From positions 1-64,000 of the forward strand of contig JAKMXF010000321.1 in the NCBI GenBank assembly GCA_024704765.1: a stretch of 64,000 nucleotides of DNA, in the 5' to 3' direction. Of the stretch, positions 1,324 to 32,600 are shown one piece after another (within the stretch, counting starts at the first letter, position 1; every line of letters begins with the position of its first letter). This stretch comes from Oopsacas minuta (taxonomy: Eukaryota; Animalia; Porifera). The notes beneath the pieces were generated by a model, which was not told the origin of the DNA, did not search any database, and saw only the letters and a list, made by a program, of their open reading frames with translations. The translations under genes were made by a program, and so were the position numbers.

Positions 1324-3221
1324 CTAAGTGCATTTGCTAAACAACCATTCACTTGCTAGACATTGATCTGCAGTAGCTCTCTTCCCAGGGACAAGGTTAA
1401 GCATTGGCATTAAGAAATTAGAAAATAATTCTGCTTCCTCTAATTCCCATCTGTACTTCTCTACGAGGATATCTTTAAGAGGCCAGTACTCCAGACGGTG
1501 TATATGTCTCAGATCTCCTTTCTTGTTGAAGAATTCTTTGGAATATTTCCCTTTCAGAGCTATGTGTCTGGGAATAGAGCCTAAGAGTTCAGTTACGAGG
1601 GCTATATGATCTTCGTCTCTGGAGTACGTGTCCCCCTGATGGGGCTCGAACAAATAGTCCCCTGTTGCTAGTTCGAAAGCCAGACAGGCGACGGACCAAA
1701 TATCCGCAGAGGTGGAGTAAGGAATTCCTAAGAGAACTTCAATTGCTCGATATTGTCGAGTTTGTATATTCTCAGAAAAGTGTTTATCCACCCAACAAGC
1801 ATTTCCTAAATCTGCAATCTTTACATCAAACTCAGCTAAATTATGATTATTCACACATTCCAAACTCTCCTCTCTTCCTAGCAACAAATCCTCTGTCAGC
1901 TGTATCTCATGGATATCATCCATTGAAAAGCTGCGAGGTACCTTCTGCTTAATAATGATGTCATTGCCTTCGTTATTGCCATGAGTATCAATAAATTGTG
2001 GAATAATAGGTTCCAGTTTATCACACTTCAGATCCTGACAAACAAGCTCTGATTCTTTAGAAATAATTAATTCAATTAGTTATTTGTATATTTGTATTAG
2101 CGTAATTACCTGTCGTAGCTGTATAGGTTAGTTTAGCTATTTTAGCCTTTTCTTTCTTTCGTTTCTTCTTTTGCTTTCTTCTAATTTTCTGTTTTTCTTC
2201 TTTTGTTAAACAGCTGTTCTCCTCAACCTTACAGCTGTTATTGTTTGTTTTACAGCTGTTCACCTTAATCTTACAACAGAGCCCATTGATTTGCTGTGCT
2301 GTCTGCATGCTCTGTAGTTCCAGTTCTTGTTTGTCTCTTTCCTTAATAGCAGCTTCTCTCCTTACAGCCTGTGAGTGCTCTCTCCTCTGTCTGTATAGAC
2401 ACAGAGAGGATACAGCCTGGTATGGCAAGAGGTAAGCAGGTACACATTCTGCAGCTAACACCTCAAGAGACACTGGGTCCATCTGTAGGAGAATATTCTC
2501 AGGTTTTATGTCCGTGTGAATAATCCCACACACAGAATGGAGGTGACTAAGTCCTGTTAACACCTGTCTAATTATGTGCTTAACTAGCGGTATTGACAAT
2601 CCAGAGTAGTTACCCTGGACAATAGGACGCAGGAGATTGTCCCCTAACACCTCTAGCACCATACAGATATGGGTACCTGATCCCCTATTGGTCACCTCAA
2701 AGTGGTCCATGAGTCTAACCACAGAGCTCTGTTCCTGAGCAGAGGCAGCCTTCAAAAGAGCCAATTCATCCAGAGCTGTCTCTTTGTATTTTCTGGCACT
2801 CTTCATTATCTAGATACATAATAGGCTTAAAGGAATGTAAGTTAATAAATCTAATTATAACTACCTTAACAGCAGCATAGCAATCAGTAGCTGAATCAGA
2901 AACTAACCAGACGGTAGAAAAGTGACCCCAGCCAAGCTTCCTTAGGATCCTGTACCTCTGGGAGAGGGTCTCCCCTATCTCAGCTGGATAGTAGCCCCCT
3001 GGACAATAGTCCCTCAGGTCCTCTTGTTCCTCATCTAGGTTTGACACTTCCTCAAACAGCTGGGGGTCTAAAGGACCCTCCAGGAACCCTCTCTCTGAGT
3101 CAGCTGATGAGGATCTACTCCGGTCCTCTGAGGAATCCGGGGGAGGCTTTAGGCGTGTAATTCTAGCGCCATTCTTCTTCTGACGAATCAAAGCCTTCTT
3201 AGGAATTCCCTGTCTAGACAT
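1324..3221 (-). CDS. SRPK1: Serine/arginine-rich protein kinase (SRPK family), 3 exons: 3221-2865, 2809-2110, 2054-1324
   Basis: Motifs [59 protein letters not shown], plus a spacer insert. Two 55-bp GT-AG introns join the ORFs in frame. Confidence 0.95.
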
Positions 3222-3386
3222 TTGATTGGCTAGCTAGTTGTTGCCATAAAGTTACTTGGTGTCAAAATATGAATATATATCTCAGTAACAGATGCATAGA
3301 CCTGTTCCTTAGACAGGTGTTAATATATGTATAATCATAATTAACGAATTCTTGTAATAACTAAGTTCAAACTAACAAAACTAATT

Positions 3387-28889: not shown

Positions 28890-29606
28890 ATTATGTAAAA
28901 TATTAATATTGCTGAAAAATGAAAGTTTTAACTGAGTTAATAAATCTTCCTTTTATACTAAACAGACACAATAAAGCGCCTAACAATCCAGGTGGTTGAT
29001 TGGTTAATACGGGTTCTAACAGATATCGTATGTTAGTGACATATGTCAGGGTTCCCATGGAAACCGAAGGAATGTCAAAACACAAAAAGAACGTGGAAAT
29101 TAAAGAAATTTTAAGCCATCAAAGTTGCACAAAAACAAAGAGAATGACTGATATGAAAATGTACATAAATAGGACTATAAAAGGCGTGAATAACTGGAAC
29201 TAATATTTGTACTACTCATCTTAAGATCACTGATACGCCATACGTACATAAAATATGATTATTTGAGATTCTAGGTGTGAAGTGGCAGTAATAGATGTCA
29301 GCAAATATCTACGCCTTAAAATTGAAAGCTTTAAAGTTCTGAATACTTTCAGTAGCCAATGAAACTGCTAGTTTCCCTGAATTGAGACATGGTGATTCTA
29401 ACCAAAAATATGAATATTTAATAACACCTGTAAAGTATATGCGAGACTTGTGGTGTCAGCCAATCAGATCGGAGAAATCTGTGTATATTACCATGGCAAC
29501 AGAATATAATTATGGAATGCTATCTCTCTATAAACGGACGAATCAGATTAGAGTTTAGAAACTACGGAGATAATGTGAATAGTACGTAAATGCGTTAGTG
29601 TACAAA

Positions 29607-32600
29607 CTAGCTAGAATGTTTAGGGAGAGACAGACTCAGAGCAGATACACCTAGATAATCAGCTGATCTGTATTTAGTCTGGATAGCCTGCTGAGAAAAG
29701 TTAGGCGCCGAATGGAACTGTAGGTGTAAGAGTGTCCTACAGGTTTGTATCTCAAACCAATGATATCCAGTATGACGTGTTAAGGAGGAGCTCCATCCAG
29801 GAAGACCTACAGTCTCAGCTGACAGAGAGACAGCTGATGCTGCTACCATAGAGGGATTGTACCTATACGATATACGGAACTATTAATATGGAACTGAAAC
29901 CATAAATAGTAACTACTCCGTTTGTGTATTATCATCCCCTCAAATAGTTTGAGTAATTTTATAATAAACCACAAAATTATGATTATTACAAATGTGATTT
30001 GTTGATGAAAATATTCTATGAAAATACAATAAATTCTAATATTTTAAAGTGTTAAGTTATGTGATTCGCAATCATTCGATCCATCCGATCACTCGATAAA
30101 CTGACGACCAATCAGATTGCAGTGTTATTAAATAATTCACAGAATTAATTATTCATATAAACAGAATATTAGCCAATCAAAATGACTTCTTGTTTAAATG
30201 TATTATTTTGGTTGCTAGGTAATTCACAAAGGAATTGAAATATTAATAAAGTATATTAGATAATATTTATTAGGAATTACACTATTACGGACATTACAGT
30301 ATTACGGGTATTATGCTATTAATATTTGCCATACAGAACTAGCTAATACATAGCTAGGGGTAAATACCCCTAGGGGATTATTTAATTCAGTTGGTTCCAT
30401 ATTATGACACTAGCGATAGTTAGTTCCATATTGATATACAGTAATAGAGCAACCGGTTTTTCGGGACAAAATGACCTATGCCCTATTAAGCTGAGTCTCT
30501 GTATATCAATATGGAACTAACTATCGCTAGTGTCATAATATGGAACCAACTAAATCAAATTCTACATTAGCTAGTATGTATATTGTAAACAAAATTTGTA
30601 TATTAAAGATAATAGAAGAATAAATAAATTCTTTGCTAGTATTCCAGAGAAGTTAGCAATCATATTAACTATAGAAGGGTAACAAATGGACCAGACCCCT
30701 ATGGGCCCAACTACACCCCTAATATTATTGGTGTAACAATTTACAAACAAATCATACCATTACGTGACGTCACGGATATAGCTCTGCAAATTTATCAGAA
30801 ATGAAATCAGTTGCGAGGAAGTATGACTCTAAAATTACATAATTGTACTTCAAACTGGAACTAACTCAATTTCCAGTTTGAAAGGATTTGAACTAAACCA
30901 AATAATTTGACGCATTTGATTGGATAAATTCTAATAAAAGATATTTGAAAGAGAAAGAGTAATAACTCCAGACAGCGATCTGATTGGTTGACAGATCAAT
31001 AAAAGGTGACGAATGCGTCTCTGATAATTGAAATAATTGTCTGTGCCAATTTTGCAAACAATAAACTAATAATACAGGAGGATATGAGTAATATTCACAC
31101 CTTGGGGTAGAGAGAAGGGATGATATTCGTATTACTAATTGAATTAAGGAAATTCTATCTGTAATTAGTCATTATTCACATACCTGAGAATTATTTTGTC
31201 GTTAAGGAGAGCAAGCTCACAGAGGTACGCCACCAGGTGTTTGAAATTGTCAGGGGAGGGGGTGACCGCTCGTATGAACCTCTCCGCGAATAAATGAGCT
31301 GTAGGCGCCAAAAGATTGAATTCCAAAGCCTACATACATAGCAACCGATCAACCAATCTCATTTTGTAGAATTAAATAATTAAACTATGAATTTGATTGG
31401 TCAGAAAGGTCAGAATAATTAGATTTGATTGTTTTTCCTAAAAAGTAAAAATAATGGAAATATGAATCACGAGTGAATGATTATTAATATTGTGTCGCCT
31501 CAAAATACACAGTATACATTACAAAACAACAATTACGTAACCAGCCACATGGACACAATAGTAAACGAGATAAATACAATCAAGAAATTTACATTGTTAG
31601 CGTTGCTATGCAGAAGTTATCAAAATTGAATATTTTAAAAGGATGCCATCGCCATGGTAACGTAAGATATCATACACATTTGGCGCCACAATTAAATAAT
31701 CATATGAACATAATTAAATCCACAAATAATCACAAAAAATAATGTTTTGACTACAAAAGTGTTTAAGGACATTTTGTTACTGTAGCGCTATGATAGTGCA
31801 TTCCATATAAACATTGTGAAACCAAGATATGTCGAGTAAACATTCTTGTAAGATTCGTTGCTATGGAAACTAATAAATATATAAATTTAAGGAAATCATT
31901 CCAAAATAGAAAATAAACAAAGATCTGTAGAAAACAGCTGACCAATCAATTTCTATTTACCTACCAGGTGATGTTATCTAGACTCTTAAACATTCCTGAC
32001 TATTAGCATAGCAACGGGTGGTTAGTGGCAGGATACACACTGAGGTGTTGAAAATACAGCTGACCAATCAAATAGAGCATAAATATTGTCACAAGATCAT
32101 GTCCTACCAGTTTTAGGCGGGTTATCAGGATTTAGGCGCCAATTCTAGGCGGGTGATTAGAGGTATAATTCTGGCGGGTAATAAAATGTATTTATATAAC
32201 AACCTTGAGTATGAGTGCTTCCATTCGCACAACCTGTCTCTTAGTGTATGTATCATCTGTTATGAAAGCAAACTCTGACAATTCGGGCGGGTAAATCTCT
32301 TCAAATTTACTAGCTACATACATACAACATGTCCCCACCAGCTGTAGCTTAGTCCTGCTGACTGACATTAGTGATAGGAACCTGTCTATGTAATTAATAG
32401 CAAGGAAGAGGGTCTGAGTCTTAAGCTTATACTCAGTGGATACTTCTACTAGCCAGTCTACTAGGATAGCTCGCATACCTATAAGACAGATTGGTTGTTA
32501 AGAAGAGGACAGTACTCTTCCATATAATAATAACAAGTTAGTCGTTATATGAATTGTATAGGCACAGGGTTCCAGAAGTGTCCTCCTTTCCAGAGACCGC

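Follow-up and report, generated by a model that had tools for sequence, protein, structure and literature searches.

Two short words, CAGCTG and CCAATCAG, recur through one part of a 64-kb genomic stretch from the glass sponge Oopsacas minuta (64,000 nucleotides, here called the window), and the locus raises the question of what these words are, at which level they act and how far they extend. An initial annotation of the window took them for parts of a HIP1-like, hyper-iterated palindrome that is written over exons as a genome-wide second code. As an observation, this was borne out in its counts, its coordinates, its reading frames and its resistance to shuffling, and it failed in the palindromic unit and in placing the sites mostly in coding sequence. 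As an interpretation, it is retained as a code laid over exons, and is given up both as a single 16-bp palindrome and as a genome-wide phenomenon.

Abundance and distribution of the two words

The window contains 136 copies of CAGCTG, where background models of order zero, one, two and three predict 7.9, 10.3, 23.2 and 47.2 respectively. The first 17 kb hold 58 of these, in agreement with the more than 50 counted earlier by eye, and 100 fall in the motif-rich neighbourhood (Table 1). The second word, taken together with its complement, occurs 35 times against an expectation of about 1.5–3 (1.5 at zero order, 2.7 at order two), and 33 of the 35 copies lie between 4.6 and 31 kb. For both words the excess over chance is 15- to 25-fold, and within a single gene neighbourhood it affects exons and introns as well as spacers. 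Among E-boxes the enrichment is specific to CAGCTG: the pair CACCTG/CAGGTG (47 copies) is only about threefold enriched, CAGATG is found 42 times, and CATATG (17) and CACGTG (6) show no enrichment. The observed/expected ratio of CpG in the window is 0.49, which is uninformative about CAGCTG.

Contrary to the description of the sites as mostly coding, DNA lying strictly outside ORFs shows just as strong an enrichment, with 15 CAGCTG against 1.4 +/- 1.1 expected (11-fold). The introns of the FYVE gene likewise match its exons in density, with 4 CAGCTG in approximately 731 nt. Nine of these introns, all GT..AG and 48–130 nt long, are backed by spliced contigs, the RNA support coming from one run (X4), and two further introns are predicted. 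Both predicted introns open with GTAACCAATCAG, one at 18453, where the short orthologous interval contains CAGCTG in three of three relatives, and the other at 17807, between loose contig ends at 17806 and 17858.

Table 1. Coordinates of features in the 64-kb window
Feature	Position	Strand	Remarks
Motif-rich neighbourhood	2200..31500	.	100 CAGCTG (3.4 per kb), 33 CCAATCAG; ~15 compact genes on both strands
624-codon ORF	4146..6017	-	No Pfam domain; 15 CAGCTG
Complete 16-bp palindrome CCAATCAGCTGATTGG	4623..4638	.	Two CCAAT words sharing one E-box; only copy
TMEM208 and Nop16 genes	6068..7055	-	Pfam; 6 CAGCTG (6.1 per kb)
Receptor tyrosine kinase with Ig ectodomain, PTK7-like	7289..10819	-	Pfam
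Two cAMP-receptor-like GPCR genes	13108..15979	+	Inside the rich neighbourhood, almost without both words
FYVE coiled-coil (EEA1-like) gene	16153..20767	+	Pfam FYVE; 26 CAGCTG (5.6 per kb), 10 CCAATCAG
Micro-duplication: 11-bp tandem duplication with two E-boxes	17740..17760	+	Tandem Repeats Finder
Predicted start of FYVE-gene intron, reading GTAACCAATCAGCTG	18453..18468	+	Loose contig ends 18452/18531
Two CCAATCAG words (27501, 27576) in spacer upstream of RFC gene	27501..27583	+	Promoter-like position
Tandem array of five receptor-type tyrosine phosphatase genes	36083..56161	-	Pfam

Two words rather than one palindrome

The copies of CAGCTG define the word A-W-CAGCTG-W-T. Information in the logo is confined to positions -2/-1 and +1/+2, with no CC at -5/-4, and the flanks from -12 to -3 and from +3 to +12 stand at background level. 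A dispersed repeat or MITE remnant was rejected as their source because the copies share no sequence past +/-2. When half-sites are oriented by transcription, position -2 reads 81/11/8/15 on the 5' side and 68/15/14/18 on the reverse-complemented 3' side, and variation on one flank is independent of that on the other (odds ratios 0.93 and 1.24, not significant), which fits two half-sites read by a dimer rather than a hairpin or duplex. The second word, from a pooled logo of 132 copies, is Y-R-R-CCAATCAG-M-T (Y at -3, R at -2 and -1, M at +1, T at +2).

All of the coordinates previously assigned to the 16-mer, the 12-mer AATCAGCTGATT and the partial copies hold, the 12-mer being found at 4625, 4910, 6750, 9205, 9809 and 12841. 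The proposal that CAGCTG and CCAATCAG are halves of one 16-bp palindrome can point to the complete copy at 4623, to the ATCAG common to both words, and to the 7 of 35 CCAAT words that run into an E-box. It is contradicted, however, by the E-box logo, which carries no CCAAT signal, and by the overlap itself: CTG follows CCAATCAG no more often than it follows any ATCAG, so that the overlap stands at the level predicted from the shared pentamer. The 16-mer occurs once in the window and is missing from approximately 82 kb of related genomes, and an independent O. minuta locus lies at baseline. A single HIP1-like 16-bp palindrome serving as a genome-wide second code, as first written, is very improbable.

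Codon choice and peptide sequence

In 51 long ORFs, CAGCTG occurs 104 times, against 26.7 +/- 4.6 after synonymous-codon shuffling (z = 17) and 12.5 +/- 3.5 after codon permutation (z = 26), about fourfold above the shuffles that preserve both protein sequence and codon usage. The comparison with codon-shuffled coding sequence on which the initial annotation had staked its claim thus leaves the enrichment in place, and an effect of codon or dicodon usage is rejected on the same figures. For CCAATCAG the corresponding counts are 19 against 3.8 and 1.6. The sites occur across many unrelated proteins and, as originally reported, in all reading frames (46, 47 and 11), where they take up 61%, 61% and 33% of the contexts that synonymous change permits, against 9%, 17% and 3% expected; overall some 60% of the places where the protein permits CAGCTG actually carry it. 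Gln-Leu pairs are spelled CAGCTG in 46 of 75 cases where 7 are expected, so the DNA word overrides synonymous codon choice. It also shapes the peptides, since keeping the amino-acid order yields about twice the count obtained by codon permutation, and on both grounds the claim of a DNA-level code superimposed on exons stands. The 624-codon ORF, where 15 of 22 permissible contexts are used, illustrates this: 13 of its 15 copies lie in the frame nCA-GCT-Gnn, giving repeated S/T-A-D/E peptides in a low-complexity tail.

The use of all three frames, the 11-fold excess outside ORFs and the equal density of introns and exons together indicate that the effect of CAGCTG acts at the level of DNA. It is hardly credible that it is an artefact, whether of codon usage, of amino-acid composition, of tandem repeats or of a family of dispersed repeats. 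Three small tandem arrays do contain CAGCTG, and the richest proteins include coiled-coil and low-complexity ones, but the micro-duplications found by Tandem Repeats Finder (17740..17760, 2210-2275 and 4708-4755) produce at most 6 of the 136 sites, the flanks are without similarity, and the enrichment holds under both shuffles, in non-ORF DNA and in introns.

Regional restriction

The excess of both words is regional, not genome-wide as had been supposed. In a comparison covering one neighbourhood and one control locus, CAGCTG is carried by 67% of permissible contexts at 1–32 kb, 39% at 32–64 kb and 14% at the independent O. minuta locus (L013), against a codon-usage baseline of 10%. That locus has 7 CAGCTG in 21 kb and uses 3 of 22 permissible contexts, where 2.3 are expected; its CAD gene, though rich in introns, has few copies of either word. 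Outside ORFs the density is 1.75 per kb at 1–32 kb vs 0.38 per kb at 32–64 kb. A uniform mutational force would not produce such a regional excess.

Density also varies from gene to gene. Within the PTK7-like gene, the Ig exons (8678-10819) have 7.9 CAGCTG and 4.2 CCAATCAG per kb and the kinase exons (7289-8674) 1.4 and 0.7. The GPCR genes have just 2 CAGCTG in a 2.9-kb span, with one of seven permissible ORF contexts used, and show the same poverty in all relatives. The phosphatase array contains no CCAATCAG and approximately 1–3 CAGCTG per kb.

Related glass sponges

The same two words are enriched in four related glass-sponge assemblies, the comparison that had been proposed at the outset, despite a GC3 of 0.55–0.60 there vs 0.39 here. 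At aligned codon positions CAGCTG is identical in 40–42% of cases vs 5–15% for other hexamers (P 1e-6 to 3e-12), and CCAATCAG in 72%, 36% and 12% vs 9%, 6% and 2.5%. Gene-by-gene densities are correlated between species (rho 0.64–0.77); all six CAGCTG of TMEM208/Nop16 are kept at the aligned position in one relative (spA), and the last phosphatase gene, which adjoins the cyclin gene, is without CCAATCAG in all four assemblies. Sites also turn over between species, with patterns such as present/absent/present/present. In contexts of identical amino acids CAGCTG is identical in 65–81% of cases, against 15–31% for other hexamers and against a stationary context usage of 42–48% in the relatives (P 0.03–0.001). 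Conservation of position thus appears only moderately above what shared pressure on conserved peptides would be expected to give.

Predicted AP4-type and NF-Y sites

The most likely explanation of these results, to which we would give an even chance, is that the words form dense, conserved clusters of predicted sites at which an AP4-type bHLH homodimer and NF-Y would bind, superimposed on coding sequence. A-W-CAGCTG-W-T would be a two-fold symmetric E-box, most likely read by an AP4-family homodimer, and Y-R-R-CCAATCAG-M-T an NF-Y-type CCAAT box. E-boxes at about 3–8 per kb and CCAAT boxes at about 1–4 per kb would be kept across a tightly packed neighbourhood of some 30 kb, whether in exons, in tiny introns or in spacers. 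As non-coding space is scarce, sites would be placed wherever the protein tolerates them, which would leave few synonymous choices unused and bend protein segments under weak constraint towards Q-L, S/T-A-D/E, N-Q and Q-S-D. What is established of the words, namely their sequence, symmetry, frame independence, override of codon choice, confinement to a region and presence in related sponges, suggests protein binding, these particular binders, and a role for the clusters in how the neighbourhood is transcribed or in the state of its chromatin.

The A-W flanks of the E-box word probably agree with the published AP4 matrix, and the Y-R-R...C-A-G flanks of the CCAAT word probably with that of NF-Y, whose consensus has R-R before CCAAT and C/G-A/G-G after it, as found here. 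CAGCTG is the preferred form among CANNTG, with equal half-site logos and independent flanks, and AP4 itself binds as a homodimer exclusively, at CAGCTG and, as a minor alternative, at CACCTG (PMC3698521). An AP4-family gene is reported among only ten bHLH genes in O. minuta (PMC10280926), and CAGCTG figures among the promoter-proximal words of fly and human (PMC1779564). Against the binding-site reading, the density and the near-saturation of codon contexts exceed those of ordinary clusters and look more like pervasive pressure, and the gene-to-gene pattern partly tracks protein constraint, as the kinase and Ig exons illustrate. NF-Y boxes are promoter-proximal and in either orientation, whereas most CCAATCAG copies lie in gene bodies and few in upstream spacers; comparison of haplotypes, moreover, had a contradictory outcome.

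Should CAGCUG and CCAAUCAG act instead in pre-mRNA, for example as splicing enhancers for very short introns or by self-pairing, the 18 sense to one antisense CCAATCAG in aligned coding sequence (10 to 1 in the PTK7-like gene), the two predicted introns that begin with GTAACCAATCAG, and the probable transcription of almost all of this compact region would find a place. We nevertheless judge such an RNA-level signal improbable. The sense bias is largely explained by coding, since one antisense frame contains a stop and another needs Trp (9 antisense permissible contexts vs 26 sense), and both CCAAT orientations are found in spacers. The E-box flanks are two-fold symmetric relative to transcription and uncorrelated, which argues against extended self-complementarity, and the intron-rich CAD gene is poor in both words.

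Of the mechanisms first offered, a regulatory one fits best, and a repair bias fails genome-wide and is left in a regional form only. In that form, a motif-favouring bias of mismatch repair or gene conversion, stronger in some chromatin or recombination domains, would rewrite CAGCTG and, separately, CCAATCAG wherever protein selection allows, and the words would be functionless. This is possible, though we think it unlikely. It would account for the similar preference in synonymous contexts (odds ratios approximately 8–15) and non-coding DNA, for high usage in most genes of the neighbourhood whatever their function, for the lower density of strongly constrained domains and the turnover of sites, and for a GC3 slightly higher in the neighbourhood (0.39) than at the baseline locus (0.32). 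Yet the two regions that differ in context usage (67% vs 39%) have equal GC3 (0.39 and 0.38), and the one-mismatch neighbours CAGTTG/CAACTG are not depleted (24 vs about 26 on a zero-order estimate). Under such a drive it would be coincidence that the words are exact recognition sites of two ancient transcription factors, and the two words, which are unrelated, have their domain and their conserved gaps (GPCRs, phosphatase array) in common across all the species. We also know of no eukaryotic enzyme with a specificity for writing CAGCTG or CCAATCAG.

Likeness to known systems

Dual-use exons have been described (bioRxiv 10.1101/2021.09.06.459186, PMC6790085), and the present sites resemble duons and homotypic clusters in being transcription-factor words, in many copies of one word, that constrain codons inside coding sequence. 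They differ in extent, occupying about 60% of eligible codon contexts and reaching 5–8 per kb over whole genes and a 30-kb block, with peptides bent as well; the sites are predicted ones. The core, symmetry and minor CACCTG form recall AP4 (TFAP4, cropped in Drosophila) and the fly 'Ohler 5' E-box (PMC3698521, PMC1779564), but known sites lie near transcription starts, one or few per gene, and here gene bodies are filled. Similarly, the CCAAT pentamer with purines before and C-A-G after, and the few copies upstream of genes, are as in an NF-Y box, but most copies are exonic, nearly all sense there (largely a coding constraint), and reach 4 per kb.

Cyanobacterial HIP1 (GCGATCGC) is a short palindrome, 15- to 300-fold over-represented, in genes and conserved (PMC5861425, PMC13756078); it is genome-wide in bacteria and linked to orphan methyltransferases (PMC4390886). 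CAGCTG is likewise a short, over-represented palindrome that lies in genes, in all frames, and is kept between species, a likeness that holds for the 6-10-bp E-box. Unlike HIP1, it belongs to an animal, is regional and coincides with a known transcription-factor site, and its repeated unit is not the 16-mer first proposed.

Among animals there are also motifs read collectively over a gene set or domain. The fly MSL/CLAMP recognition elements, the worm X motifs and the periodic A/T clusters of worm germline genes are short words in many copies through gene bodies; they are not classic E-box or CCAAT words and mostly avoid coding sequence, and for the words described here a domain-level function is only proposed. 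On that proposal, a dimeric DNA-binding protein would bind the words, which collectively might mark a chromatin domain or a set of 'own' genes, through an open state, protection from silencing, replication or nuclear positioning in the syncytium, and would not be enhancers or promoters of single genes. The even density across a 30-kb block of several genes, in exons and introns as in spacers, and the conserved domain edges at the phosphatase array are consistent with this, but the GPCR genes within the block are skipped, which fits gene-wise action better, and we regard such marking as rather doubtful.

Implications

No account of such a code over exons was found in two glass-sponge genome papers or in the hexactinellid CAGCTG literature searched, in line with the earlier statement that none was known. 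It is tempting, if speculative, to extend the domain-level proposal to a collective DNA code of glass sponges, in which selected gene blocks would be marked for some state of chromatin or nucleus in syncytial tissue by thousands of AP4-type E-boxes and NF-Y boxes that run through exons, introns and spacers, override codon choice and reshape proteins. If true, animals would possess a counterpart of the hyper-iterated words of bacteria, in a mode of regulation undescribed for any metazoan. If instead a conversion or repair bias is at work, we know of no earlier case in an animal of a motif-specific molecular drive this strong. If the sites are bound, they would be an extreme natural case of regulatory information over coding sequence, in which transcription-factor words set the codon in about 60% of eligible places and, in weakly constrained segments, the amino acids as well. 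The finding bears on the disputed 'duon' question, on regulation in very compact animal genomes and on the conservation of synonymous sites in sponges; for annotation and evolutionary-rate work on glass-sponge genes, it is a warning that synonymous sites here are not neutral.

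Abundance and shape of the two words

The window, at 37.7% G+C, contains 136 copies of the E-box word CAGCTG, compared with 7.9 expected from base composition and with 10.3, 23.2 and 47.2 predicted by Markov models of order 1, 2 and 3, respectively; models of higher order take in sub-words of CAGCTG itself. One hundred copies (3.4 per kb) lie between 2200 and 31500, and 35 in the remaining 32.5 kb. The initial annotation had reported more than 50 in the first 17 kb, where 58 were counted, and the coordinates it quoted were all correct. Counted together with its complement, the CCAAT word CCAATCAG is present in 35 copies (expected 1.5, or 2.7 under an order-2 model), of which 33 fall between 4.6 and 31 kb. 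Among the E-boxes CAGCTG is specifically favoured: CACCTG/CAGGTG is found 47 times, with CACCTG enriched about 3-fold, CAGATG 42 times, CATATG 17 times and CACGTG 6 times.

The two words had been proposed to be halves of one 16-bp palindrome, a reading that has to be given up. Across the 136 CAGCTG sites, information in the flanks is limited to A at -2 (92/136), A/T at -1 (114), A/T at +1 (114) and T at +2 (85), so that the E-box word is A-W-CAGCTG-W-T, while the CC positions of the supposed palindrome (-5 and -4) are at background. When 132 CCAATCAG sites of the window and the relatives are pooled, their logo reads Y-R-R-CCAATCAG-M-T, and with purines in front the word would match the NF-Y box. 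The words have ATCAG in common, and CTG directly follows CCAATCAG in 7–58% of cases and any ATCAG in 25–53%, never in excess. The window has one complete 16-mer, and some 82 kb of sequence from the relatives has none. The palindrome is thus ruled out as a unit by the logo, by the conditional frequencies and by the comparison with relatives.

When 115 CAGCTG sites were oriented by transcription, the preferences of the 5' half-site equalled the reverse-complemented preferences of the 3' half-site, and left and right flanks varied independently. A protein dimer reading two half-sites on duplex DNA would leave this pattern, whereas a hairpin or a signal in single-stranded RNA would not; the uncorrelated flanks rule out a hairpin or self-duplex. 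A role for the words at the RNA level is made unlikely by this symmetry. It would draw on the 18:1 sense bias of exonic CCAATCAG, but most of that bias is accounted for by the frames in which the word can be encoded: contexts in which the protein would permit CCAATCAG number 26 sense and 9 antisense, of which 15 and 2 are used. RNA-strand specificity is left as a weak rival.

Override of codon choice and protein sequence

The enrichment persists once codon usage is controlled, a check that the initial annotation had called for. Over 51 ORFs of 100 codons or more that do not overlap one another (12,801 codons), CAGCTG occurs 104 times, compared with 26.7 +/- 4.6 when synonymous codons were shuffled with the protein kept and 12.5 +/- 3.5 when codons were permuted; for CCAATCAG the corresponding figures are 19, 3.8 and 1.6. 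Gln-Leu pairs are spelled CAGCTG in 46 of 75 cases (expected 7.0), [S/P/T/A]-Ala-[V/A/D/E/G] triplets carry it in 47 of 77 (expected 13.1), and x-Ser-[Cys/Trp] contexts in 11 of 33 (expected 1.1), so that the word, as had been claimed, is present in all three reading frames, each to the extent that the code gives room for it. The amino-acid sequence is also bent, since the two shuffles differ two-fold and Gln-Leu pairs are over-abundant in the first 22 kb (38 against 24.4); a 624-codon ORF, for example, has S/T-A-D/E runs in its low-complexity tail.

Outside every ORF of at least 60 codons (14.8 kb, 32% G+C) there are 15 CAGCTG against 1.4 +/- 1.1 expected, and 10 CCAATCAG against 0.35. This non-ORF excess, together with the shuffles, the context usage and the Markov models, rules out a codon, dicodon or composition artefact, and the word excess is a feature of the DNA rather than a by-product of the proteins. 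Intron positions were taken from spliced contigs of one same-sample run that behaves like RNA, although it is not recorded as such, and that was used solely for this purpose. They define nine introns in the EEA1-like FYVE gene, and loose contig ends imply two more. CAGCTG has the same density in its introns (4 in about 731 nt) and exons (22 in about 3.9 kb). Three micro-tandem arrays containing CAGCTG account for at most six sites, and similarity between flanks ends at +/-2, so the word is not a repeat family and an origin in tandem or dispersed repeats is ruled out.

Other sequence features

The window, which has a CpG observed/expected ratio of 0.49, has a strong excess of other classic factor words too: there are 14 scattered E2F-like TTGGCGCC/GGCGCCAA (0.3 expected) and 11 scattered copies of the CRE palindrome TGACGTCA (0.3–0.8 expected). 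The pair AGGTGTTA/TAACACCT occurs 45 times (2.5–3.8 expected), evenly spread and in both orientations (for example at 27753-27893), with 36 of the 45 outside aligned coding sequence; it is weaker in the relatives (0–7 per 20 kb). CAACAAC occurs 127 times. The GTTGTT/ACAACA-rich arrays probably encode Thr/Asn-rich stalks, and the CTGCTAGAAAGTGGCATA array would be a 6-residue repeat in the ectodomain of the fifth phosphatase. Unrelated contigs of three runs pile up at two short stretches in or next to introns of the FYVE gene, which marks these stretches as parts of a dispersed element present in many copies.

Features of the window and of the control locus
Feature	Position	Description	Location
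338-bp unit	1-787	2.3 copies, 99% identity	window start
16/32-bp repeats	787-916		directly after the 338-bp repeat
FYVE gene introns	16424-20777	48, 49, 49, 49, 54, 56, 60, 107 and 130 nt; tiny, uniform, all GT..AG	EEA1-like FYVE gene
Short stretch	18497-18532	depth spikes; ends or stacking of many unrelated contigs from each of the three runs	in or adjoining an intron of the FYVE gene
Short stretch	19776-19814	depth spikes; ends or stacking of many unrelated contigs from each of the three runs	within an RNA-supported intron of the FYVE gene
GTTGTT/ACAACA-rich arrays	38244-38505, 39081-39140, 42239-42414		phosphatase ectodomain ORFs
18-bp unit CTGCTAGAAAGTGGCATA	55056-55907	47 tandem copies, 86% identity	long ORF of the fifth phosphatase gene
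TRIM-NHL-type gene	56759-63344	RING, filamin, NHL repeats; 1 CAGCTG in ~6.6 kb	
Two CCAATCAG	56860, 56899	39 bp apart	RING exon of the TRIM-NHL-type gene
Control locus genes		CAD, Sel1, Rad51, mGluR-like	JAKMXF010000066.1

Related genomes

Relatives were found through the CDK5-activator ORF, whose orthologues (75–84% identity) lie on long contigs of other assemblies; the loci of four were taken, three of them extended by walking, and all four are collinear with 6–39 kb of the window. At 43–54% G+C and a GC3 of 0.55–0.60 (0.39 in the window), they exceed zero-order expectation 7- to 14-fold for CAGCTG and 15- to 75-fold for CCAATCAG, with the same A-W flanks of CAGCTG. Two remoter contigs (39–43% identity) show CAGCTG about 3-fold over an order-1 model, without the flank pattern.

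Codon alignments were derived from tblastn, with coding frames from ORFs and tblastn alignments and no curated gene models. In three relatives, the position aligned with a window CAGCTG also reads CAGCTG in 27/68, 24/59 and 18/43 cases, against 15%, 10% and 5.5% for other hexamers (P 1e-6 to 3e-12); where the amino acids are identical the match is 65–81% against 15–31%. The control words CAGCAG, CAGCTA and CAGCTC are near background, and CCAATCAG is matched at 72%, 36% and 12% against 9%, 6% and 2.5%. Much of this apparent conservation is shared pressure on conserved peptides, because 42–48% of permissible contexts in the relatives carry CAGCTG anyway; over that baseline the excess is modest (P 0.03–0.001).

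Per-gene E-box density correlates at rho 0.77, 0.70 and 0.64 between the window and the individual relatives. TMEM208/Nop16, the FYVE gene and the Ig segment of the receptor kinase are rich in all species; the GPCRs, phosphatase, kinase domain and CDK5 activator are poor in all, and CCAATCAG was not found in the cyclin-adjoining phosphatase gene of any species compared. In one relative (locus L005, about 4000-5000), nine CAGCTG lie within one kb upstream of the cyclin gene, a cluster absent there in the window. Haplotype pairs, compared as a gauge of present-day constraint, contradict each other: L003/L004 has fewer differences inside the words and L001/L002 more, probably owing to indel clumps. 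A second organism (B, run X5 of another study) matches 17442-20684 at about 93% identity, with 232 differences in 3.3 kb; as a close relative it is suited to fine-scale tests of site turnover.

Regional restriction and interpretation

The initial annotation envisaged a genome-wide second code, and this does not hold for the one neighbourhood and one control locus compared. The control was reached through a paralogous GPCR and lies in the published O. minuta assembly, on contig JAKMXF010000066.1; its 21 kb contain 7 CAGCTG, and the word is carried by 3 of its 22 permissible contexts against 2.3 expected, which is baseline. Among unmasked O. minuta hits, the proteins of the window match paralogues only, which supports assigning the window to that species; a comparison of the window with the control found no shared repeats. 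Within the window, 67% of permissible contexts are used in the first 32 kb and 39% in the second (P 3e-4), and non-ORF density is 1.75 and 0.38 per kb, respectively, at like GC3 (0.39, 0.38). The force thus acts by region and in part by gene, which counts against a uniform mutational attractor. Uniform genome-wide pressure had been considered because coding and non-coding odds ratios matched, and was dropped on the baseline locus and the 4.6-fold non-ORF difference. Less probably, a regional conversion or repair bias lies behind the words, or they collectively mark a domain; both readings draw on the near-saturation of codon contexts and on the partial dependence of usage on protein constraint.

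No mention of such words was found in two glass-sponge genome papers, and a literature search pairing hexactinellids with CAGCTG brought up nothing but a survey of bHLH genes from 2007. Among the closest described systems are cyanobacterial HIP1, from which these words differ because they are regional, belong to an animal and are the same as known factor sites, and exonic transcription-factor sites and homotypic site clusters, from which they differ in scale. AP4 binds CAGCTG only as a homodimer, with CACCTG a minor alternative (PMC3698521), and an AP4-family gene is among only ten bHLH genes in the O. minuta genome paper (PMC10280926); in flies and humans CAGCTG is found as a promoter-proximal word (PMC1779564). 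From sequence, our reading is that two putative transcription-factor words form dense, conserved clusters over a block of tightly packed genes where non-coding DNA is very scarce, and that the putative factor sites would sit wherever the proteins tolerate them.
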